Of a stretch of DNA of 64,000 nt, positions 9,865 to 50,994 are shown piece after piece (position 1 is the first letter of the stretch; each line of letters starts with the position of its first letter). The position numbers and the translations under genes were made by a program. The stretch is from Pelomyxa schiedti (lineage: Eukaryota > Protista > Evosea). The stretch is from the NCBI GenBank assembly GCA_020536535.1, contig JAHLWZ010000306.1, forward strand, positions 1-64,000. Direction: 5' to 3'. The notes beneath the pieces are model-generated. The model was not told the DNA's origin. It saw nothing but the letters and a program-made list of their open reading frames with translations, and searched no databases.

Positions 9865-12800
9865 TCAACCACAGAGAATAATGTAAGCACATACTTCATC
9901 CAGAGAATCAAAGCGACGGCCCAGGGTGGGTCCAAGGTATTCTACAAAGTTAGCTCTGTCCACGATGAGTATGTTTGCATCGGTGGGTATCTCAGGGAAA
10001 TTTCGATTCGCAGGAAGCTTCCTCAAACTAACAATCATCAGGATAAGTGTCGCTCCGCGCCATCCCACTGTTTGCATCAGGCCTCGCATCTGCAGCTGTG
10101 CATTGCGCCACTTGTCCAAAATTTCCGTTACAGTGAGTACGGTCTTACTGGATGCTTCTGAATACTTTGCTTCAAGACAAATGATGAACTTGCCTTCCCC
10201 ATCCGAGTACGGCAACAAAAAAACAGTCTCAAATCTTGTTTTGTTGTTAGACGATCATGATGTAGATGTAGTATTCGTGGTTTGAGGGATGTAAGTGAAG
10301 GTACACACCCTGGGTTGTTGGCACAGCACCGGACTACCGATCCAACTTTCAGTGAACTGCCATTGCTCTGAAACCACGATGAGAACCTGTGAGTTTTCCC
10401 TTCATGAGATGCATTCCAGCAATGAAACCTGGGCAACCGCGGGAAGATTGCCGTCAGTGTGTTGGTACATGCACCTCTACTGAAGATGGGGTTCCCAAAC
10501 ATTGAATTTACACAAAATGGCCTGCCACGATCGTTTGTGTCATGGCATAAGGTGAGAAGAAATGGATGAAGGGTTGCGAAATCCTCCAAAGCTTGGCCAT
10601 CCAACCAACTCACAGCAGGATTTAACAGAAACTTCAGGAGATTTGCAACCTGGAAGGGTATATTCTCTGCATTCAGCTCAAGTAGCCGTGCGATAGCCTC
10701 AAATGTACTCGCAGGGAGGTGGTGTGAAGTGAACTCATCAGCAAACGCAAGAAGGGTCAGCACACTGGTGTAGGGTTTGTTATCAACACAGAATAGGTAT
10801 CCACAGGCCACCAGCTGTGCGAATTTCTTGCCACCGATGAGGGAATCGGACTCCAGCCTTTTAGCAATGATCACAGCACGGATAACATCCAATGATGAGG
10901 CACCAGAAAAGCCAGTTCGGGTTCCTGCCATGATTGTTGCAAGGCAGTAGGTATGATTTTGGAGTAGCATAGAAGCACTAGTATCCTTCTTCAGCCAGTT
11001 GTTAATACTTGTCAGCAAGCAGGGGACCCCTCCTGTGTCCAGAAGCAAAAGCTTAAGACCAACTTTGGCTTCAGGTTCCAAGTGGTTGAGGTGCTCCTTG
11101 AACAGTTTTACACACAATCGGAATGGGATAGGGTCCAGTGGGGGAGCTATGATCCGTCGGCTTGACCCTGTTTCCACACTTTGTACCCAACCTCTATCTA
11201 GGCAGGATAAAACTACAATAAAGGCACTGGCATCAGGGATGTTGACTGTGATCATGTTGTCATCCATCATTTTGCCCAACTGGGAGCATATAAATTGAGA
11301 TTTGACCTCAGTATTGGATCCCCCATCAGATAGTAATATTTCGTCAACACACAATAAGAAGTGACGTTTCTTGCTATGCCGAACAATAGCGTCAAAGAGG
11401 ATGTCAAATAAATGAGGTTTGGAACTGGAAAGCTCAACCAGACTTTCCCAGTTTTGGATGTGAGAGACAAAAGTCTGAAACCCACCATTCACAAACCAAT
11501 GCCTTCAAAAGGTAAAGACAAGTCACTTGGGGAAATAGAAAAGCATACGAGTACAGCATTCTAAGGAACAGGCCAAGGAGTCCAGTGGCATGATCATCAC
11601 AATAGGGCCAATAAGGTGCATCACCGCTCCAACTTATTGTTGTACATGAGATATCACTTACTCCTTCCTGCTGTAGAGTTGAAGTAGTTGTTAATGGAGG
11701 ACTGTCTTTTTCGATAAAATTTACAATCTCATCTAGGGCCCTTGACTTGTTTTTTTTTGTGAAAAAGGGTTTCAAAAAAAACCTACTAACCTTTCCGCTA
11801 CCTGGAGCACCAACAATGGCAATAAGAGGATTCATCGTGCGTTTATCTTCCGGGACAGCTTGTTGAGGGTTGCAGCGTTTTTCAAGGTTTCCACGAATTA
11901 TCTTCAGTGAAGTGTCTCTGCCTACGAAATCAGGGAAGACCACATGTTCAACGAGTTTGTTGGCGGAAAATCTTGTCTTCAGTCTTAAGCCGAGCTGGAG
12001 GAAGTGTGGGGCAAGTATCTCCATGCCCTCGCAAATACTTTGTGCACTTGATACATCCAGGTAGAATTTGGAGTCTCCAGTTGATGAATAAACTGGTGGT
12101 ATGCTGGAGGGAATTGGCATGATGCTTGCCAAAATGACTTGCACTTTTTCATGTACCTTTTGTTATAACTTAACGTGTTTTTGAGAAAAATCAGGCAACA
12201 TACAAGATGGAGCTGTTCCATAGCGAGGTCGGCCACTGTCTTCATATCTTGAATGATACTTGCATTAGGGTGGCCCAGTAGTTGTTTTGCGTATTTAACT
12301 GCAACACTTCGGCGATCTTTCATTAATTGAACCACAGATATTTTGTCTTCCTTTTGAATGGTGTCGTCATGCAAAATTGATTCTATTGCAGAGTCTATTG
12401 CTGAGTTGACATCTAAATACTGTTTCTCCAGAGACGTGACGTGCATTAGAAGGGCTCTTGGGGGTACTTCAAGACTTTCAACAGTGAACTCATCCTGATG
12501 CTGCGTTATGAACTGGATAGCAGCCTCTGGGCAATCTGACATTGATGTGAGAGTCTCAAGGGCTGTGTGAAGAGCTTTTTTTTTATTGTAAGCCTGCTTT
12601 AGAATTGATGTTGTGTAAGACAAGATTGATTCTGCAGTCTGCAACTTCTTCAACTCTGCAATCTCAAACAGGGATGGGTGGCTCTGTATAAACTCAACTA
12701 ACTGCAGTTTCCTTTCTGTTGTATGAGGAGAGAAATGGCTGTTTAATTGGGCAGCACAGGTGGTATCAACAGGCTTGACAGAAGTTGAATCAGCGCATTT

Positions 12801-13238
12801 CAAATTGGTGGGGAGAGGAGCCGCAATTGTGGCGCTTTCCCCTTCACAATTCGTTGCTGACACATCAGAGTCAATACTGGAGGCAGTTTGCAATGTTGGG
12901 GGTTGGGACACAGTCAAAGTCTTGAACATATGTGAGATAGTACGGTTGATTGGCTTTTTTGGCGATTTGGCACGGAGACTGGCTCCTTTGGTCGCTGCGG
13001 TATTTGGCAGATTACGGCCACCGCGCCTGGCATTTTTATGTTGTGGAGAGCTGGCCTGCGTCGGCGGCGGAGCTGCAGCCGAGCTAGTCGTAGTCGTAGT
13101 CGTCGTGGTCGTGGTGCTTCCGGTGGTGACCGGAGGTATCGGGATCAGTGCTGCGGCCGTTGTGGTTGCACTGTGTGTTGTCTCTACTTTACGTGGCAGG
13201 GAGTGGGTTTGCATTGTGTTCTTCTTCGACTTGCCCAT
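9865..13238 (-). CDS. Crinkler/RHS-type protein: low-complexity and helical N-terminus + P-loop NTPase + C-terminal PD-(D/E)xK REase-like domain
   Basis: Walker A IAIVGAPGSGK(S) across an intron, Walker B FLLCVDE, DTGGVP; spliced C-terminal CANNPGFE...IICLEAKYS; long exons in ORFs 11985-13238, 11434-12144, 10128-11492 and 9865-10218. Confidence 0.7.
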
Positions 13239-13313
13239 TGCGGCTGGGGCCAGACTAGGCTCTCTTGTCTTATCTGAGGATCGAAGTCGGCAATTCGGTT
13301 TTATTGGACTTGA

Positions 13314-13592
13314 TATTGGCCTGACGATTCAAGTTCAGCAGAGGGTGTTGGGTTGGTACATTCCCTCTCCCTTGTCTAATATAACCACTCAACAACAACA
13401 GGACAATGGATGCCACTGACAAACATAGTGCATGGCAGGCTTTACCCGCCTTCACCCTCTTCCCCTCGGCACCAATACCCACACCAAGGGAGAAACCCCA
13501 AAAAGGTGCCAACAACCAAAAACGGACAGATTTCAGAGAAACTGGCTTTCAAACCCAACACCCTCTGCTGAACTTGAATCGTCAGGCCAATA
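13314..13592. mobile_element. MITE-like non-autonomous element with perfect terminal inverted repeats (39-bp TIR + TA, or 41-bp IR)
   Basis: tattggcctgacgattcaagttcagcagagggtgttgggtt (13314-13354) is the exact reverse complement of 13552-13592; 197-bp spacer with no recognisable product. Confidence 0.72.
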
Positions 13593-15143
13593 GGAAAAAA
13601 GAGCAACAATAGTGTCAGGAATCAGGAATGACAAATTGGCGGGCTTTGAGCGTAGCGTTCAACGTTCCTGCGTGCATCCACAGTCCTTGCAGTGGAGTGG
13701 GGCGTAAATAGATTAATCAGCGTTTTCTCATCCATTCCATCTTTTTGGGAGCATTCGTTGGCACCACTGCTGTTTGTTCCTCCAAAGGAGCAACAAAAAG
13801 GTGGGAAGAAAAAAAACCTGTGAAATGTTAGGGGGAGAGCTGCTGGCAATGGGGGGGGTGACAGGTCTATCGGGGGAATTACCACGGCCGCCCCCTGCCA
13901 CCTGCCCAATCTCCACTCTCCCTCGGGAAAAAATGCGGGTTTGCTCGGATTAAAACACCGTTTTTTGCTGTTGTGAGACAAATTGTGGGAAAACGAAAAG
14001 AAAAAAGCGTTACGGCCGGTCTGAAAACCCGACACCAGACGTCGAAGGTGTATATGGCAAAATACACCCCACTGTTGTGTCAGTTATCTCTTACTACCAC
14101 CTGATGGGTTCCATCACCACCCTCAGGTGGTCGGTTTGGACTGTGCAGGCGGCGGGGCCCTTTGCAATGTCCGTGTAAATGCATGCCCCGCCCCCACAAT
14201 GATTTGCACCACAAATCCTCAAAAACCTGTGTGCACTTGTTCCTATAAATGCATGTTCCAAGCACACAATATTGTGTTTTGCTGAATGTTCTGCCTTTAT
14301 CCTTGGTATTGGATTCTGATGTCATTGGGGGACATTGCTCTCGGCTGATTTTAACAGTGTCTGCCTTGCAGCATTACTGCTGAGCTGCGCATTTTCTTTC
14401 CAAGTGTTTGCAATCACCATAAGAGTATGTTTTGATCTGACTTGTGCTACAGTATCCAGAGCTTGTACAGATAAGTGTTTCTGCTCATGGTGGTCATAGA
14501 ATGAGTATTGAATCCTTCTGCCTCACTTTCAGCAACACCTTCAATCAATTTGATTTGGCACTCCATTCACCATCAATGCTACTCATGAAGTACAACTTAG
14601 CCACAGCCGAATTCTGAGGTACTGGCAATGCACAGCCATGTTACAGATACAGAAAGCACATTGCAATGTTGGCTTCTCTGTTGGCTTCTTCCTTCAGAAG
14701 ACCATGTCCTCAATACAAGCAAGCACCGAGACAATTTGATGTGATGGTTGATTCTCACAAGCCTCAGTGAGATGCAAACTGTATCAAAAATCACCTTCTT
14801 TACCACTGCCTCAATGCCTTTGTTTTTCATTGTGATTGCTGTTGTTTGTATGATAATGTTACAATTAACCCCCACCTTGTGCCTTTGCCCTGGTGACAAT
14901 CAACTACAGTGCAAATTAGTTCAAATAACAATGAAGTCAATTATGGTACTCACACACAAGGACTGCTGCAGGACCAGGCACAGTTTCTGGTCCACCCTTT
15001 GGGCCAGCTAAATCCACAAGAGCAGAATTTTCCCTCCACCCATCAACATCCCATGAGAACAAGACTCCGATTCATCAAAACGGGTTTTAGTGAGTCCCAA
15101 CATCCATAATTTCCACGAAAGTGTGAACCAGCGTCACTCGTAG

Positions 15144-16674
15144 ATGCAGTCGACGGGGCATCGTGGTGGCTCGAGCCTTCGCGAATCTGGAGGATCCCAC
15201 GCAACCCCGTTTTCGAAACGTTGCGTCATTGCAATAGCGGTGGTCTGCGTGACGTCGATACTGGCAGTAACTTTTGGCATTCTCGCATTGATTCCAACTT
15301 CCTCCGAATCGAGCGCACGGCAAGCTGTTACGACGAAAGAGGTGTGCATCGAAACTCCGAAGCAGGCGAGCAATCGTAGTATGTCTGGAGTAATTGACAG
15401 ACTCAGCACAACTTACACAAAAGTAGGTTTGCTTCATGCCACATTCGTTCGTTGAATTAGTACGAAACGATTTATAAATTAAATAATGACTGTTGGCTTG
15501 ATTCGACGTGAAGGCACACTGTAAATCAAAGATGAAATCCCAACGTCAATTATTGCTGTGAAGATGGCAAACTAATGTACCTCATGTTAGTCTGGAAAGA
15601 GATACACGTCCCTTGAGGCGGCATTGAAGGAAACAAATGAGTACAATTCAGCAACAGTCTGTTTGCACCCTATCATATTCGTGGAGTAATTTCTCTATCA
15701 GGTGGGAAACAAGAACTACAGAGGTGGAACATTTCCAACAGATAAGAAAACGAGGCATTTTTACCTTCGCCACTATGCGACTCTGTTTGCTCCCTACGTG
15801 GATCGTGACATTACCATTCTCGAGATTGGAGTCAAGATGGGTGGAAGTGTGGCCCTCTGGCGTGAATTTTTCTCGCCACAATCGCACGTNNNNNNNNNNN
15901 NNNNNNNNNNNNNNNNNNNNNNNNNNNNNNNNNNNNNNNNNNNNNNNNNNNNNNNNNNNNNNNNNNNNNNNNNNNNNNNNNNNNNNNNNGCCACTATGCG
16001 ACTCTGTTTGCTCCCTACGTGGATCGTGACATTACCATTCTCGAGATTGGAGTCAAGATGGGTGGAAGTGTGGCCCTCTGGCGTGAATTTTTCTCGCCAC
16101 AATCGCACGTTTTCGGAATTGATATAAACCCACTTGTGCCTGTCTTCACGCAGGAACCTAATATCAAAGTATTTTTGCTCACCAAAAAAAACCAAGTACT
16201 GATAAATAGGTTTTAGTGATGGATTCACGAGACTCCACATTGGTAGACCAAATATTTTCATTACGGAAATTCGATATAATTGTGTGCCATGTGCCGTTGT
16301 ACAAATGAAAATACCTACGTCGTTTTTATTGCACAGATTGATGATGGTAACCACACAGAGGAAGCTATTTTTCTTACATTTAAGTCTCTTTGGCAACACA
16401 CGGAACCCACTGGCGTCTATGTTCTTGAAGGTTGTTGGTACCTCCCTGATATCCTAAATGAGTCTAATCTACTTCAACAACAGATGTTGATGCCAGACCT
16501 CTGAGAGTGATAGCTCTAATGCAGAGTAACGGATGGGAGCACTGTTGGATTCAAGATACAGTCAACGCAGCACACAAAATGGAATACCTCGTAATAGGCT
16601 ACCCACCCTTAAGCCTTGCTCCCCGCATTGGGGAATGTATGGTCCCTTACTGGAATGAAACCAGCACGCTGTGA
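15144..16674 (+). CDS. Class I SAM-dependent methyltransferase (MycE/Methyltransf_24-like) with N-terminal membrane anchor; spans a gap
   Basis: TM segment CVIAIAVVCVTSILAVTFGILALI; TDKKTRHFYLRHY, ILEIGVKMGGSVALWREFF, FGIDIN, IDDGNH, GVYVLED. Confidence 0.8.
15890..15989. other. Scaffold gap with duplicated flanks (15769-15889 = 15990-16110)
   Basis: 100 N with an identical ~120-bp overlap on both sides. Confidence 0.95.
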
Positions 16675-16802
16675 TAACCATATCACAGTAAAAAGAAAAA
16701 AGGTGCACCAAAGTTTACACCCAAGCCTAGCCTTACAAAAAAAAAGGAAAAGTGAAAGTATTTGCTTGAATTTTGATTTCAGGCAAAAAGGCTACATGCT
16801 AT

Positions 16803-42962: not shown

Positions 42963-45900
42963 ATGAAGCCCATCGCCTTAAGCCACGAGGCCAACCGAGC
43001 CGTCGCAGGCGGAAACCTCCACGCAGAGACTGAGGCTGCAACGGCCGCCGCCACCAGATCCGATTCCTCGCCACCTGCCAATGCCGGCATTGTGGGCCAC
43101 CTTTTGGTGGGCCTCGACGTGGGCAGCACGACGGTCAAGTTGGTCGCGATGGCGCAGCAGATTCGACCTGCCTCTACAGAACCAACTTACTGGCCTGTCT
43201 ACAACCATGAACAAATACCGACAACGAATTCGCCTGTGGGTAGATCCATTTCGTATACTTCGACGACTACGGCTGCGGCGAGGGCGGACCCAACGCCCAT
43301 AATCACGCCTCAGCAAGGGAACGCGCACACCACTACATCGCTGGTGGACGAGTTTCTGGGCAGCCTCGAGTTTACCACCGTATTTGAGTGCTATAAAAGG
43401 CACAGATATGACGTCAATGGCACTGTATTGGAAGCTTTCCGCGAGTTTTTTGACGCGCTGCCGGACGTAACGCAGCGATACCAGACTGCTCAGAAAATAT
43501 TACGGGATACTTTTTCACGAATTTCCGGAATCACAGTCGATTTGGGGGAATCTGAACATCCTCCTTCTTCAATGGCACACAATTCACACGAAAATACAAA
43601 TGCAACTGCATCAAGTGACATTAAGGAGGAAAACTATGAACAGTGCCTGTTTACAACAGCATGTGTGACTGGCTCATGTGGAATGCAACTGGCAGAGGCA
43701 CTTGGCCTCCCATTTGTTCATGGTAGGTGGTCTTTCTCTATCACCTTAAGAACTGCATATGTTGTTTATTTATTTGCCCTAAGAGATACAGAGGTTGTTG
43801 CTTGTGCTGAAGCCGTAAGAAAATTGATTCAGCAACACGTTGATGTAGCCATAGAGCTTGGTGGTGAAGATGCAAAAATCATGCGCTTCACAGAAAATAG
43901 TATGGATACGCAAATGAATAGTACTTGTGCTGCAGGTACGAAGTTCAGGGTCAATAGGGTATTGCCTAGTAGTACTAATATCACCAAGGCACCGGGGCAT
44001 TTATCGATCAAATGGCTGCCCTGCTCCAAACTGACGCTGCTGGCTTGAACGCCTTCGCTTTAGAACACAAATCTATCCACCCAATTGCTGCACGTTGTGC
44101 TGTTTTTGCCAAGACGGATGTCCAGACTCTCCTAAGTGAGGGAGCAACAAAAGAAGACATTTCTGCTTCTGTTTTGCAGGCAGTAGCTGTTCAAGCAATT
44201 GGGGGATTATCTGGTGGACGCCGATTATCTGGAAATGTTGTGATGCTAGGGGGTCCAATGCATTTTTTACCTGGCCTGAGGGAGGCTGTATGTTCAGTGG
44301 CCATGACTGCCGGAGCACAAAATGCGTTTACACCACCCCATGCACACGCAATGGTGTGCAGTGGGGCAGCTCTCCATGGATATGGCAAATTTTCTCCAAT
44401 GCCTCTGTCTTTTTTGTTAAGGAGAGTGGATCGCTATTTTAGTGGAATTGGAAATTCCAGTTTGCAAGTGGAAAGCTCAATTCCGTCCCAGAGGTTGCCA
44501 CCTCTATTTACATGTGAAGACGAGTTGATAGCATTTCAGCAAAGGCATTCCTTGCATTCAGCCAAACGAGGAAATATTGAAGCAACATCTGGACCACTCT
44601 TCATTGGCATAGACTCAGGCTCAACAACCTTCAAAACCGCAGTCATCGACTGCCACGGCAATCTACTACATACAATCTACAGTTCTCATCGAGGAGAAAC
44701 CATGTCCACAGCAGTGACTGCACTGGCAGAAATACAGAAACTCATAGGATACGTCAGCACGGGTTCATTCTTCGCTGCAGCTTGTGCCACAGGCTACAGT
44801 GAACAGCTCATCAAAAAAGCTTTCCGGGTTGAATATGGTGTTGTGGAGACAATGGCACACCTTAAAGCTGCGAAATTTCTTCACCCAGATGCAGATTTTG
44901 TTCTGGTTTGTGACTAAATAAATATTATCATTTTTTTCTTATTTCCTCAGGATATAGGTGGACAAGACATGAAATGTATTTCAATTTCAGAAGATGGGGT
45001 GATAAAAGACATGTTCCTGAACGAAGCTTGTTCTTCTGGCTGTGGATCTTTCATACAATCAGTCGCCAATGTACTGGGCCTCACAATTGAAAAATTCGTT
45101 GAAGCTGGATTGAAAAGCCGATCTCCAGTAGACCTAGGGACACGATGCACAGTATTCATGAACTCCAGGTAGCTCTGTTTAGTCCTTCACTGTGCCGGTT
45201 TCAAACAAGAGTTTTCTACTTTGGCAGAATTAAGCAAGCTCAACAAGATGGTGCCTCCCTGGAAGACATCTCGGCGGGACTTGCCATCTCTGTTGTCAAA
45301 AACGCACTGTTTAAAGTTATGAGAGTTCGATCTATGACTTCACTCGGAAAGAGGATAGTTGTGCAAGGCGGGATGTTTTTGAATGATGCCGTTCTTCGCG
45401 CTCTGGAGATAGTAGCAGGTGTGGAAGTTATTCGGCCAGATATTGCAGGCAATATGGGTGCCTTTGGAGCGGCATTAGAAGCCAAAGCCATGTGGGAAAA
45501 GCAGTTAATGGTATAGTGTCCACCTCTGTTCTTCTATCTGACTGAGGGAGAGCAGACACAACAACAAGAGCAGACAAATTGTCCTGTAGCACATTCTACC
45601 TTTTTATCATTGGATGAATTGACAGCATTAAAGTGGAAGTCCGTAAACCGTCGCTGTTGCAAATGTACCAATAACTGGTTGTCCAGCCTACTTTTGTTTC
45701 TCTTTCTTTAAGTAACCTTTACAGTCTGCTCACAATCCAAAAATTCCATCACATAAATTCCACTACAGAACATATTTCGGGGAACAGATGTTCCTTGGGA
45801 AGCATGAACTTTGATAATCCGCAACACCCACCGTGTGCTTCACCTCAACTATCTCTCAACTTCCACAGTACCGGCACTTCACATCCTCTAAGCAACATGT

Positions 45901-48900
45901 TTGAGTGGCAACGAAGACGTGTTTTCCGCATAGCAGACCCAACTCCGCCAGCACGATGCAGAGGTAGTGTCGGAATACCTCGAGCACTTCAGTTTTATGA
46001 TGAGTTTCCCTTTTGGGAAGCTGTTTTCAGAGCACTACGGTTTGAGGTATTGTTGTCCCGCGAGAGCTCGGACAATCTCTTCTCCATGGGATTGAGCAGC
46101 ATACCAGTATGCACGCTTTTCGTATAGCATTTCCATTTAGAACTGCAGGTGGATGGATGTTGCCTCCCAATCAAACTCCTTCATGGTCATCTTGTGGACC
46201 TGATAAAAAATGGCAGAGCAAATTTTATACTTCTCCCTTGTGAGCCAATGGCTGCCAAAGACATTCCTTCTTCCAGTGGAAGCCCCTTCGAGAGAGCTCT
46301 TTCTGCAACTGAATATGACTATCAATATGGATCCACATCGGTGCTGAATCACTGTCCACTGTTAAGTGGTTACCATAATGTCATTGCCAGCAATTTAGAT
46401 ACTGCTCAAGCTCACTTTTTGCATCCTGCTGCTCCATTGTTTGATCTATCAGCAGCAGCTCAACATCTTTATGTGCAACTTGCACCTTATTTTTCTGGTT
46501 TGTCCTTCCCAATTGGGTATTTATTGTTTCACATCCTGTGACAGATATTACAAAGAGAGAAGTTTCGTCTGCAATGAAAGCGGGTGCATTGGCTCAGCAG
46601 TGTTACCGCGATGATATAAAACGTGCAGGTGAGGAGGCACTAAGATACATGAGACAGAGTGGTGCAAATGGAGTTGTTTTAGCATGTCGACCTTATCACC
46701 TTGATCCCTGGTTTGGGGCAAACAGTGTCGCTCGAATGTTGACTGCATGGGGGTATTGGGTCCTAACTTGTGAAAGCATAGTTCATCTGCAGCCAGATAA
46801 AAAAACCAAGGCAACACAAGGATGGCCTGGATGGCGACTTCTCAACACATTTGTGTACGATTCCAGAGTCCTCCATTCTGCCTTGGCTGTTGTGCAGGCT
46901 GTAGATTTGTTACTTGTGCATTTTATGTCGTTTGGATGCAGCATCTCCCCTGAGACAGATGACGAAATTAAGGTTAAACTTCCTTTTGTCTTCCATATCC
47001 CAAATTCATTTCACGTCAAGGCACTGTTCAGATACTTCAACCACCCACATTGTGCAATTAAAATTGATCAAAATGCTAATATGGCTTCACTGCGAGTACG
47101 AGTTCGTTCCCTCCTTGCTACGTGGGAAGAGCAGCGAGCACAGAAAATGGGTGCTTCGTTGACAGCTTCATCTCTTGCCTCTCGAACTTCCACAAGCAAC
47201 ACAACTATCTCTACTTGCACAAGCACTGGGATTACCACCAAAGCATCAGTAAGCTCCCTGCGTCCAATTCCTTATCGAGCAGATTCATGTTGCAAGGCAC
47301 CTACAACCATTCTCTTCATGGTACTATTTTACCATAAATACTTTGCTATAATTCATGGAACTTTCATCAATTACTAGAATTTCTCTCCTGAGCACACGAA
47401 ATTGTATGCCACTGCTTTTAATACCGGTGGTTACCATTCCATACCCTGCCCTGATATTCCTGAAGTGGCTCGTAATGAATTGGCAATGCGTTACATACAT
47501 CCTGATGTATGTTATGGAGTGAGTATAGTGGTTGGTTCGTGGTTGTATGCACTACTGAATGGCTTAGTGGATCCCAATAATACTGATGTAATGTAGAGTT
47601 GCTCTTTTATCAACGGGTTTTTTCCAAAATCAACAAATCTCAGGTGGATACATATGGGTGGATCCTGCACATCTAGGCGTATGGCCTGGTTTGCTCGGGA
47701 TGCTTTTGATAGGGCTGGTTTCCCACAAGTTGGTGTATTCTCCATTGATTGCTCAGGTAGATCAATTAGCCAGGATTGGTACTAACTTGAAACAGCAACT
47801 GTAAATCCAGCTTATACCTTGGGTCAGACTCTCCGTATTAATATGGGTCTAGCATGGGGTGACGCACTTTCTATGGTATCATCTACTCCTACCGACATTT
47901 TGTTAAAGAGTACAGGTTTTGTATCGCACTCGGCCCTATGAACTTATCCCCAACAGTGCTAATACACTACACCAAACTTGGATGGAGCGTGCCTTGGCCA
48001 GTGTAAGTACAGGCAGTCCTGTACTTTTCAGTTCTCTGGTTCACGAAATGGTGAAGGATTTTGAGGCCCTTCCCCTGTGGACAGAGACACATGACAAACC
48101 TAGAGTGGGACTTGTTGGCTTGATGTGCAAGGTCTTATCATTCTATTTATTACGGAAATTTATATATATTAGGCAGATCCTGTAAAATACAATTGGTTAC
48201 TGCGATTCCTAGAGGAAGAGCAGCAGTGCGAAGTAGCACCATTTTTTTTCACTGAATACAGTGAAGTTGCTGGGTACAACAATGTGGCGAATCATAACTA
48301 TTTTGCTTCTGATACTGGGAAGTGGCTGGGTGGGGCTGCGTGCAGGTTTATTGGTATCTTACTGCATCTCATTGACATTCATTAGGAAGGTCATTTGCTT
48401 ATTCAGAAATCCTGTGCTCTCGGCACTTGGAAAAAGCAAACGCTTCATACACCCACTCCCTCTTGAGAATTTGGAAAATTTGGCAAAGCGGTTTGTATCT
48501 CCACTTCACCAAGCCGGAGAAGGCTGGCTTATTGTAGCACAAATTCTGCAGCACCTACAGAACGGAGTCAGTAACATCGTTGTAACTGCGCCGTATGGAA
48601 ACACTTTGAAACTGCCAATTGACTAATTCTTGTTCTTAAGGTCTGGGTGCCTCCCTATTCACATAGGAGGCAGAGGCATGATGAAAGCTATTCAGGAACA
48701 ATACCCACAAGCGAATATAGTTGTTCTAGGTTTTGCCACTCTTCACTTACACCCAAGTAACCTTTCTTTTTCTTACAGATTATGATAGCTCCGCTAGCTT
48801 TATTCACCAGTTGAACAGAATCAAGGTAGATAGGAAAAAGCCACAACTTTCCCAATTAGTTAACACAGCAATAGTTGATGCTGTGGTGTGCCAAGGACAA

Positions 48901-49084
48901 ACCGGTACCACCACACCGCCAATTGTGTTCCCCACGTGATATTGAGGACAGTCTCTTATCTTTAGTGGATGGCCCACCCCCGCCTCATCACGGGGCACCA
49001 CCCAGCACAACTTGTTCCTCTGGAATTCCGGAATGCACTCACTGTTCCGGCTCATCCCATTGCAAGCTGACGATGGGACTATGA
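42963..49084 (+). CDS. plsA: Fused CoA-activase/reductase: 2x BadF/BadG/BcrA/BcrD ATPase + DUF2229 + HgdD-like; PlsA(R)/Ger anaerobic plasmalogen/ether-lipid synthase family; multi-exon
   Basis: Act1 [47 protein letters not shown]; Act2 [50 protein letters not shown]; CCKCTNN-C..SGNRC; [37 protein letters not shown]; [44 protein letters not shown]. Confidence 0.85.
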
Positions 49085-49184: not shown

Positions 49185-50481
49185 TCAGAGTTTACTGAGA
49201 CCATTTCTGTGTTTTGCAGTGAGAAATACGCGTTTTCCTGATGTTGCACTCTTCTCTGCCAAATCAACCAGCACAGCTGTTGCCACACAGCTACGTTCAG
49301 TACTCTTGCGCGGAATATTTTCACCTCTGACCACTCTGGAGAAGTACTCCACTTCACTGCTGAATGCAGCAAGGTACCGGTCCATGAATGTGTGGTGAAC
49401 CTCTTCCTTGCCGGTTTCCAGAGTGTTTCCAGTGTTGTTGTACACCCTGGCGTAGTTCTCGTATTTTCCATCCCCGTACCGTGTGGCTTCCATGTAGACA
49501 AATCGTCCCCCTGTGTATTGGAGAATGCACGTGGCACTGGTGAAGATTCCAACACCGGTACTGTCTTTGCCGTGTGCCTCAATGCTCACTGGCATTTCTT
49601 CCTGAATGAGGGTTATGGATTAAATAGAATTCATAGGTGAACCTTCATGAACATGCATGCTAGATTGAAATCGTGGCACATAAGGTCTTGAAATATGGAG
49701 CCCAATGTTTTGAGAAACGCTGGAGCCATGTGTGGGAAATCATTGGAGACAAGGTGCAGTGCGCAGACGTCTACTGGCTTTGTCAACACCGTCTTATATA
49801 GTGCTGAATAGCCTTGGTCGGATCGCCTCATCCAGCCACAAAGAAGTTCCACACCTATTGCATATGGGTTGGAAATGACAGGCACAAAAAGCGGACAAAA
49901 CCAAATATAAAAGAAAACGGAGAGGGAAAAATGGAACTGTACTGCTTCAGCAGTAACTCTTTCCATCACAGTTGCGAAAATACCTCTAGCTTTACACATG
50001 GCATAGCACTGTTTGACTTGCGCAGCAGTATATGCTATAGGTTTCTCACAGTATACAAATCGCGTTCTATTCACCGCTACACCAACATTTAACATTAAAC
50101 AATAAAAATAATAACAATAACAATATTATAAACGATATATTTGGTTGTTAGAAAATATTTATAGTATTAATAATAATAATAAGAAAAAAAAAACTAACCC
50201 TTCTCGATCATTGCAGGGTGGTATTTTGTAGGGCAGGAAATCCAAACGGCGTCAAACTGGACATTAACGTCCTCCAACGCAGCGAAAGCCGTCGGGTGCC
50301 CTGGCTTCCCGCTGTTGGCCCAAACCTCGTTTCCGCGATCGCTCTCAACGACGGCGACGCATCTTACGTGGGGCGACCGCGAAAAAAGGCCCAGGCGGAA
50401 TGTGCCGATTCGACCTGCGCCGATCTGGCACAGCCGAACGGGCGTGAGGGTGGTTGTGGTAGTCGAGGTTGTGCTGGCCAT
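49185..50481 (-). CDS. Gfo/Idh/MocA oxidoreductase (myo-inositol dehydrogenase IolG-like)
   Basis: IGAGRIG Rossmann motif, DAVWISCPT, YCEKPI, GWMRRSD, IFQDLMCHDF, FMDRYLAAF. Confidence 0.85.
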
Positions 50482-50994
50482 GGCGCTGTTATTATGGGAT
50501 GTAACTTGGGGATGAATAGCGGCGAGGCGGACGAGACGCGGAAGCAAAGGGTTCGTTGTTGGTCGTCGTTTAAACAAAAAAAAAGGGAAGAATAGATGCA
50601 GCGATTAGATAAGCGAGAAGGTACACCAAACTGCGAAACGGAAAAAAAAGGCAGTCGATCTGTTGTGGTTTTCTCTCCAAGGAGCCCGAGGCCGCGATTC
50701 GGAACAAAGGCTTCGTACTGAAGCGATACCACACCGTGGATTCCAAGCTCTCTGGAAGTTCGAACAATTCTCCTCTGCAAGATTTTCCTCTGGGAAAAAG
50801 AGGGGAAAAAGAAGTCTCATTCCAGAGAAAAGATTGCGCTTCCCCTCATTCCCGGGATCTTTGGGTTTCAATCCCCGCCGGCCCTCTCACAGGGACTCTC
50901 GCTGCACAGCCCGAACATCTAAACTGCCCGACAGTTCCACCCCTTGAACCGGCATTCCAACCGATTCCACTCACACCAAAAACAAAGCGATCGA

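Follow-up and report, generated by a model that had tools for sequence, protein, structure and literature searches.

A domesticated bacterial PlsA/Ger-family gene in Pelomyxa schiedti and its possible link to oxygen-independent ether-lipid synthesis

The Pelomyxa schiedti gene described here (the focal gene, on contig JAHLWZ010000306.1; Table 1) was analyzed in a window comprising positions 1–64,000 of this contig (64,000 nucleotides) and raises the question of whether an anaerobic amoeba could make ether lipids with an enzyme of the bacterial PlsA/Ger family. A 2026 PNAS survey reports that Archamoebae have lost the aerobic ether-lipid pathway and, nowhere mentioning PlsA, concludes that plasmalogen synthesis was simply lost in this group (PMC13012113). 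Work from 1976, to the extent that it is cited in a later article (PMC9702350), described anaerobic protozoa that make plasmalogens without DHAP, i.e., by a bacterial-type route, and these protozoa were rumen ciliates, not amoebae. The literature searched yielded neither a named eukaryotic gene for a DHAP-independent plasmalogen route nor a report of a eukaryotic PlsA.

Gene structure and transcription

The focal gene is intact, with an exact start and stop, and its spliced frame is free of stop codons. Its introns are 36–69 nt long, and 16 of them would cause an early stop if retained (introns 1 and 9 are the exceptions, as both keep the frame and contain no stop); at intron 5, position 45555 is a possible alternative acceptor to 45546. 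Together with the 15 of 18 intron positions that are shared with the paralog KAH3732872.1, the stop-free frame confirms what the first-pass annotation had proposed, one complete spliced gene with many GT-AG introns. All motifs that it listed are also present in the order given: NSTCAAG (residue 296), ARCAVF (336), NEACSSGC (631), TRCTVF (671), CxxCxxxC (811), GNRC (837), and DYDSS...IKLM (1669). The protein was wrongly thought to end at this last motif, beyond which it continues into a eukaryote-specific tail.

RNA coverage of the gene is low (4–5 of 30 bins), and direct RNA support for splicing is confined to intron 3, whose 45-nt GT..AG junction is skipped in RNA contigs from two runs (X1 and X2) of one sample. 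The NCBI annotation cuts the gene into KAH3764173.1 and KAH3764174.1 by a false split within open exon 9 (46753/46925), and 14 of the introns in Table 1 (2, 3, 7, 8, and 9–18) recur unchanged in these two part-models. An additional last intron of the NCBI annotation (48905–48951) was rejected because it would delete a tail motif shared with the paralog, which itself lacks such an intron.

Table 1. Features of the focal gene (positions in the window).
Feature	Position	Strand	Residues	Remarks
Whole focal gene	42963..49084	+	1,753 aa	19 exons, 18 GT-AG introns
Introns 1–6	43723-43791, 43936-43988, 44906-44950, 45169-45227, 45511-45546, 45678-45724	+
Introns 7–12	46107-46148, 46498-46544, 46973-47020, 47321-47377, 47593-47643, 47757-47795	+
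Introns 13–18	47876-47915, 48132-48172, 48346-48385, 48593-48640, 48730-48778, 48826-48874	+
Intron 3	44906..44950	+		Sole intron with splicing directly observed in RNA
Activator domain 1 (ASKHA ATPase, BcrAD_BadFG)	43110..44378	+	~50-432	Pfam E 5.5e-14 on exon 3, alignment; Fe-S cysteines C299 and C338
Activator domain 2	44597..45490	+	~505-768	Pfam, alignment; C634, C638, C673
CxxCxxxC...GNRC linker	45655..45791	+		C811, C814, C818, C840; kept in all aligned homologs
Reductase module 1 (DUF2229 and the region after it)	45966..47135	+	~899-1243	Pfam, alignment; C950, C1014, C1193 retained; SFGCGLD, YHxR, KIDE motifs changed
Reductase module 2 (PlsR-like)	47306..48877	+	~1300-1685	Alignment, HAD/BCR predicted fold; C1349, C1384, C1642 retained; DACYP, GGxCRAxNY motifs changed
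Tail	48878..49084	+	67 aa	Eukaryote-specific; Pro/Ser-rich, Cys cluster
DIEDS	48938..48952	+	1706	Fits CIA-targeting-complex pentapeptide consensus

Family membership and bacterial origin

Searches used single exons, NCBI's two part-proteins, and paralogs as queries. Exon by exon, Pfam matched BcrAD_BadFG on exons 3–5 and DUF2229 on exons 7–9, and the 2 BcrAD_BadFG domains and DUF2229 proposed earlier were also recovered on the full paralog; the expected HGD-D domain (PF06050) had no match on the focal exons, the paralog, or the genome. The description of the C-terminal half as an HgdD-like reductase therefore depends on its predicted structure (pLDDT 84.7), for which the best Foldseek matches are 7yyl, 3o3m, and 9gai (probability 1.0, TM by target 0.39–0.53). 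With resemblance to 2-hydroxyacyl-CoA dehydratase (HAD; 3o3m), DCCP, and benzoyl-CoA reductase (BCR) folds at E ~1e-4, this half is predicted to fold like HAD/BCR. The protein has 15 of 16 family-conserved cysteine columns, the missing one not being universal among bacteria, and its cysteine-rich linker is probably a metal or Fe-S site. Two low-complexity insertions of ~60–65 residues lie in exon 1 within activator domain 1.

The focal protein is collinear throughout with fused PlsA of Listeria (35.0% identity over 1,496 residues) and Acetoanaerobium (37.3%). It is 33%–36% identical to 23 Lactobacillales proteins, relatives that served as PlsA references, with 1 fused gene in each positive genome, and are themselves unvalidated; an NCBIfam model or a solved structure of PlsA was absent from the libraries searched. 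Domain order, end-to-end homology above 30%, Fe-S cysteines, predicted HAD/BCR-type fold, and branching are those of the broad PlsA/Ger family.

In a careful tree with such unvalidated relatives of validated enzymes as references, the focal gene branches among PlsA-type proteins inside a Bacillota clade (support 100/99). Seven amoebal homologs, 3 of them in the P. schiedti genome, 3 in Mastigamoeba, and 1 in Mastigella, are nested among Bacillota and form 2 subclades. The conserved subclade contains Pelomyxa KAH3745198.1 (on contig C881), Mastigamoeba m51a1_g2590, and the Mastigella eilhardi copy, and the long-branched subclade of the focal gene comprises 4 divergent copies over 2 genera, so that Pelomyxa and Mastigamoeba each retain both types. 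Mastigamoeba balamuthi grows without bacteria. All amoebal copies are monophyletic in quick trees (SH-aLRT 90–95) and in the careful tree (77/87); this single clade is absent from a FastTree run, and its placement is unsure because the stem is long (1.3–1.8). Other eukaryotes including Entamoeba are not among the best 120 matches in 3 lists, and ciliate homologs were not found; the best matches disfavor close orthologs and leave independent transfers unaddressed. The idea of bacterial acquisition and domestication is supported, as is the view of the focal gene as a real nuclear member of the PlsA/Ger family.

Conservation is markedly uneven between the 2 halves of the protein: the activator half keeps 162 of 187 invariant residues (87%) versus 94 of 156 (60%) in the reductase half, where the C881 copy keeps 148 of 156. 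The motifs SFGCGLD, YHxR, KIDE, DACYP, and GGxCRAxNY, an empirical set and not a published list, are each present in 22–23 of the 23 Lactobacillales PlsA, and all 5 are found in the 3 conserved amoebal copies versus none in the focal gene, which is therefore the weaker candidate for a standard plasmalogen synthase. It has kept all 6 reductase cysteines and lost near-invariant polar residues beside the cluster ligands; changes shared by the 4 divergent copies include Cys-Arg to Cys-Thr, GLD to S-I/V-S/A-P, and KIDE to K-I/L-DQ. An additional cysteine, C1109, occurs in all divergent copies and was considered as a fourth cluster ligand; some bacteria, too, have a cysteine there or in similar motifs. 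Judged by its sequence, the C881 copy looks like the standard enzyme and would carry the pathway claim better than the focal gene.

The tail has no transmembrane helix and no PTS1, and peroxisomal targeting was rejected given the C-terminus TMGL. Its DIEDS sequence (shuffle p 0.002) fits the CIA pentapeptide consensus D-[IVLM]-E-[DEN]-{not charged or large polar}, which was derived in human cells (PMC12910081). Such a pentapeptide is present in 6 of 7 amoebal tails and in none of 322 bacterial ones. Contig C466 of the Pelomyxa genome carries a eukaryotic Cia2 gene. This Fe-S targeting motif in amoebal PlsA-family tails is new, and DIEDS may serve in putative CIA recruitment; it would then clearly exemplify how an Fe-S enzyme acquired by transfer can gain a eukaryotic maturation signal.

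Possible functions of the focal protein

PEDS1, FAR, and FAD-oxidase_C had no match in the Pelomyxa genome in searches of which 1 of 3 included a positive control, and this agrees with the reported loss in Archamoebae (PMC13012113) in that the host appears to lack the aerobic pathway. An oxygen-independent route to ether lipids is probably present in the lineage. Our best explanation, in which we have about even confidence, is that the focal protein is an ATP-dependent, O2-sensitive lipid reductase with altered specificity and the following history. In an ancestor shared by Pelomyxa, Mastigella, and Mastigamoeba, the O2-dependent pathway would already have been lost when a fused plsA was taken up from an anaerobic Bacillota bacterium in what we infer to be a single transfer. 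The acquired gene would have gained introns and the CIA-recruiting pentapeptide tail, letting the cytosolic machinery load Fe-S clusters, and a duplication before the Pelomyxa/Mastigamoeba split would have given rise to one copy that remained PlsA-like and to the focal lineage, which kept the ATP-driven electron pump and the 6 reductase cysteines and rebuilt the surrounding residues. The 2 activator domains would hydrolyze ATP to drive low-potential electrons into two [4Fe-4S] modules of the HAD/BCR type, which would reduce a glycerolipid acyl ester. The change in specificity may lie in the head group or the position, or in the product (a saturated alkyl ether in place of a vinyl ether).

Family, bacterial origin, and an anaerobic host without the aerobic pathway thus stand from the proposal of a PlsA/Ger route, but the focal gene is not established as an ether or plasmalogen synthase given its lost motifs and the 3 copies in the genome. 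Tentatively, and with some doubt, we suggest that the bacterial reductive route replaced the lost O2 pathway, was wired to CIA by the new pentapeptide, and split into 2 enzymes, with the conserved copy making plasmalogens and the focal copy another ether class. If true, eukaryotes would have a first oxygen-independent ether-lipid pathway identified at the molecular level, and the 2 enzymes would lend themselves to working out how PlsA and Ger chemistry differ. Which residues decide between vinyl and alkyl ether products has been called undetermined (PMC13274423), and the conserved/divergent pair could reveal these residues. The amoebal genes are a concrete candidate for eukaryotic anaerobic ether-lipid synthesis, and PlsA/Ger is active in anaerobic E. 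coli.

It seems rather unlikely that the divergent copy has taken on an ATP-driven radical reduction or dehydration of a non-lipid substrate (e.g., a fermentation acyl-CoA) in the manner of HAD/BCR. The much better conserved activator half would fit such a change, as would a predicted reductase fold common to HAD, BCR, and DCCP, the missing membrane anchor, and the fact that no classical HGD-D subunit was found in the Pelomyxa genome. However, the protein is ~10% identical to true HAD/BCR catalytic subunits versus 34%–37% to PlsA, the anchor is missing from many bacterial PlsA too, and the literature searched describes no such activity for a PlsA-family protein. Family members with tested function all yield vinyl or alkyl ethers (PMC9702350, PMC12838417, PMC13159169).

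The full architecture and the complete set of reductase cysteines are also consistent with a fast-evolving but standard plasmalogen synthase that is redundant with the conserved copy, all the more as variation around these cysteines is seen in other bacterial subtypes and duplicates are maintained in Pelomyxa and Mastigamoeba. We nevertheless consider this improbable: both genera also keep the conserved copy, and a fixed new state looks likelier than drift because the same changes are common to 4 divergent copies in 2 genera. Loss of polar residues beside the cluster ligands with intact ATPase domains, and the finding of divergent copies solely alongside a conserved one in the same genome, might alternatively point to a catalytically reduced partner that supplies electrons or regulation in a complex without cleaving esters itself, but the conserved copy already has 2 activator domains, and we regard this role as quite improbable. 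A dead gene or contamination from symbiont or prey bacteria, brought to mind by the low RNA coverage and by a single-cell assembly of an amoeba described as having bacterial endosymbionts (PMC10579272), is hardly credible and already refuted by shared introns and existing orthologs, with 18 spliceosomal introns (1 seen spliced, 15 paralog-shared), eukaryotic neighbors, Mastigamoeba orthologs, and a stop-free frame upholding the earlier argument from introns and neighbors.

Comparison with known systems

If our reading of the focal protein as a lipid reductase holds, it would share its end-product class with the aerobic eukaryotic route (FAR/GNPAT, AGPS, and PEDS1/TMEM189), which consists of unrelated proteins, requires O2, starts from DHAP, and is reported lost in Archamoebae (PMC13012113). 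The HAD, BCR, and DCCP systems have the ATP-dependent activator fold in common with it (paralog versus 4eht, E 5e-30) and a catalytic fold that matches the predicted one, but they are built from separate subunits with little identity in the catalytic part and act on soluble substrates. Ger of Thermotoga maritima (Tmari_0479) and Desulfatibacillum alkenivorans has 2 BcrAD_BadFG domains and DUF2229 like the focal protein, and this BBD core is described as shared among alkyl-ether producers (PMC13159169). By description, which is the basis of this comparison, T. maritima Ger has Pfam HGD-D matches after this core, unlike the focal protein; the architecture of Ger homologs is said to vary, Ger has no known diagnostic motif, and sequence is stated not to separate Ger from PlsA (PMC13274423).

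Fused PlsA of Enterococcus faecalis, Lactococcus cremoris, and Listeria shares with the focal protein the single chain of 2 activator domains, cysteine linker, and 2 reductase modules, end-to-end identity of 33%–37%, the conserved cysteines, and the Bacillota-dominated clade, whereas Clostridium perfringens has split PlsA and PlsR. Unlike fused PlsA, the focal gene is nuclear, with 18 introns, N-terminal insertions, a CIA-pentapeptide tail, and 5 rebuilt reductase motifs. The conserved archamoebal copies differ from it in having all of these motifs and ~50% identity to Lactobacillales PlsA, in the hydrophobic C-terminus of 2 of them (C881 and Mastigella), and, for the C881 copy, in sharing no intron position. 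They belong to the same family, have the same tail motif, and probably go back to the same transfer event.

Gene structure and family membership

With 18 GT-AG introns removed, the sequence can be read for 1,753 aa without a stop; it carries all motifs listed by the first-pass annotation and bears out its intron-interrupted gene (coordinates in the table). Retention of any of 16 introns would create a premature stop, while introns 1 and 9 preserve the frame; excision of the former makes a motif contiguous again, as in bacterial homologs, and the latter recurs in the divergent paralog KAH3732872.1. RNA contigs from one sample span a minor portion of the gene and are evidence of transcription but not of its level, with intron 44906-44950 spliced out in two runs. 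One contig (depth 3.6) has a single G>C mismatch at window position 45139, which may reflect allelic variation or an error. NCBI annotates two proteins, KAH3764173.1 (1,071 aa) and KAH3764174.1 (558 aa), broken within stop-free exon 9; this split is probably an annotation error, since the paralog and all homologs are continuous.

Features of the PlsA/Ger-type gene, its paralogs and other loci (P. schiedti; C, contig)
Feature	Location	Strand	Remarks
PlsA/Ger-type gene	window 42963-49084	+	this gene, on C306
DIEDS motif	window 48938-48952	+	C-terminal tail
NCBI split	window 46753-46925		inside open exon; public annotation
NCBI extra last intron	window 48905-48951		deletes DIEDS motif, shifts frame; public annotation
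Gfo/Idh/MocA oxidoreductase	window 49185-50577	-	ends SKL; weak Pfam match; convergent, ~100 bp from this gene's stop
Conserved paralog KAH3745198.1 (L006)	C881, about 11150-16745	-	1,687 aa
Divergent paralog KAH3732872.1 (L007)	C1107		58% identity to this protein over aligned columns; 15 intron positions in common
Cia2/MIP18 gene (L094)	C466:12451-12633	+	eukaryotic
BcrAD_BadFG match	C424:15099-16173	+	no DUF2229; at a guess, sugar kinase

Search and folding queries were exons, public part-proteins and paralogs; the joined model was analysed by scripts. Exon by exon, Pfam places the expected BcrAD_BadFG on exons 3-5 and DUF2229 on exons 7-9. HGD-D has no Pfam match in this protein, so that the HgdD-like reductase proposed earlier stands as a predicted fold: the C-terminal part (pLDDT 84.7) resembles 2-hydroxyisocaproyl-CoA dehydratase, DCCP and benzoyl-CoA reductases, as does the predicted structure of the paralog's entire reductase half. 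The protein aligns end-to-end with fused proteins of Listeria monocytogenes (35.0% over 1,496 aa) and Acetoanaerobium (37.3%); in Fusobacterium, where the protein is split in two, both parts align. Together with domain layout and tree position, these alignments uphold the PlsA/Ger family call. Listeria is listed among carriers of plsA/plsR orthologs, active under anoxia (PMC9702350). All 36 positives among 121 genomes of the order of Lactococcus and Enterococcus have one fused gene each, suggesting that the fused type is the validated PlsA type.

A remodelled reductase half and a shared tail

Among 56 bacterial homologs, 343 columns are at least 95% invariant (activator half, 187; reductase half, 156). 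Our protein retains 162 and 94 of these, respectively, and the C881 copy 184 and 148. All six reductase cysteines are retained, yet none of the four divergent amoebal copies (C306, C1107, and g9340 and g1712 of Mastigamoeba balamuthi) has any of the five motifs flanking them, which occur in 22-23 of 23 Lactobacillales proteins and 3/3 conserved copies. Many replacement residues are identical between Pelomyxa and Mastigamoeba and were thus fixed early and subsequently maintained. The gene is therefore a PlsA/Ger-family member without the motif signature of canonical PlsA; of the synthase reading proposed initially, the gene, the family and an old bacterial transfer stand. The protein may nonetheless work like canonical PlsA. 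Since Ger and PlsA are reported to be inseparable by sequence (PMC13274423), its product is not readable from sequence; action on lipid esters of some kind is fairly probable, and a plain plasmalogen synthase unlikely.

Every amoebal protein has a tail beyond the last conserved helix that bacterial proteins lack. D-[IL]-E-D-[SALI] lies 20-33 residues into 6/7 tails (shuffle p = 0.0002-0.008 per tail), with a near match in the seventh, and in 0/322 bacterial tails, which are short (median about 34 residues). It agrees with the pentapeptide consensus, derived from human proteins, for binding of Fe-S proteins to the CIA targeting complex (PMC12910081). The main text of the P. schiedti genome paper makes no mention of the CIA pathway. 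We infer a cytosolic enzyme supplied with clusters by CIA, putatively recruited via this tail.

Origin and genomic setting

P. schiedti and M. balamuthi (g9340, g1712, g2590) have three copies each and Mastigella eilhardi at least one; no other eukaryote appears among the best 120 matches in three lists, to which independent transfers would be invisible. Under LG+C20+F+G4, every amoebal copy is nested in a Bacillota clade (100/99), in line with the bacterial acquisition proposed at first. The copies group in two subclades, each with full support: conserved (C881, g2590, Mastigella) and divergent (C306, C1107, g9340, g1712), the latter on a stem of 1.3-1.8 changes per site. Support for uniting the two is SH-aLRT 90-95 in quick trees and 77/87 in the careful tree, and FastTree does not recover the grouping. 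We favour a single transfer, then duplication before the Pelomyxa-Mastigamoeba split. The common tail motif supports this; the C881 gene shares no intron position with the C306 and C1107 copies, which is neutral to slightly against it. The C306 gene is real and its bacterial transfer real and old. The gene of a MAG titled Borreliella garinii (L039) clusters with free-living spirochaetes, and the MAG's label looks doubtful. Collinsella genomes hold two distant types of fused PlsA-family gene (L028-L035, L042, L081 versus L011, L089), so paired copies are kept in bacteria too.

In the assembly (5,337 contigs; 52,367,397 bases), the neighbours are eukaryotic, as the first-pass annotation had it (SNRNP200-type helicase, protein kinases, START, PIG-L and cyclophilin domains). 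The SKL-ending oxidoreductase is probably a myo-inositol dehydrogenase of peroxisomes, like that described in PMC8887013.

Ether lipids and known systems

Archamoebae are reported to lack the aerobic plasmalogen pathway, which was ascribed to loss in a paper that nowhere mentions PlsA (PMC13012113). PEDS1 (TMEM189), the FAR C-terminal domain and FAD-oxidase_C had no match in the P. schiedti genome, in searches with sensitivity reduced by introns and, for two, no positive control. Literature searches found no report of a eukaryotic PlsA. The best candidate for a standard synthase is KAH3745198.1, with nine introns, all within the activator half, before a single 3.3-kb exon, and, like Mastigella, a Cys cluster and hydrophobic C-terminus. 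These amoebae likely produce ether lipids by a PlsA/Ger-type route, mainly through the conserved copy. Prins and Van Golde (1976, cited in PMC9702350) described DHAP-independent plasmalogen synthesis in anaerobic protozoa, which were rumen ciliates; this fifty-year-old question is now testable through amoebal PlsA-family genes. To the known family our finding adds a remodelled subfamily and a putative maturation signal. The protein keeps the Act1-Act2-Red1-Red2 order of PlsA (PMC12838417) and the BBD core described for Ger (PMC13159169). Classical HAD activators match only the activator domains.
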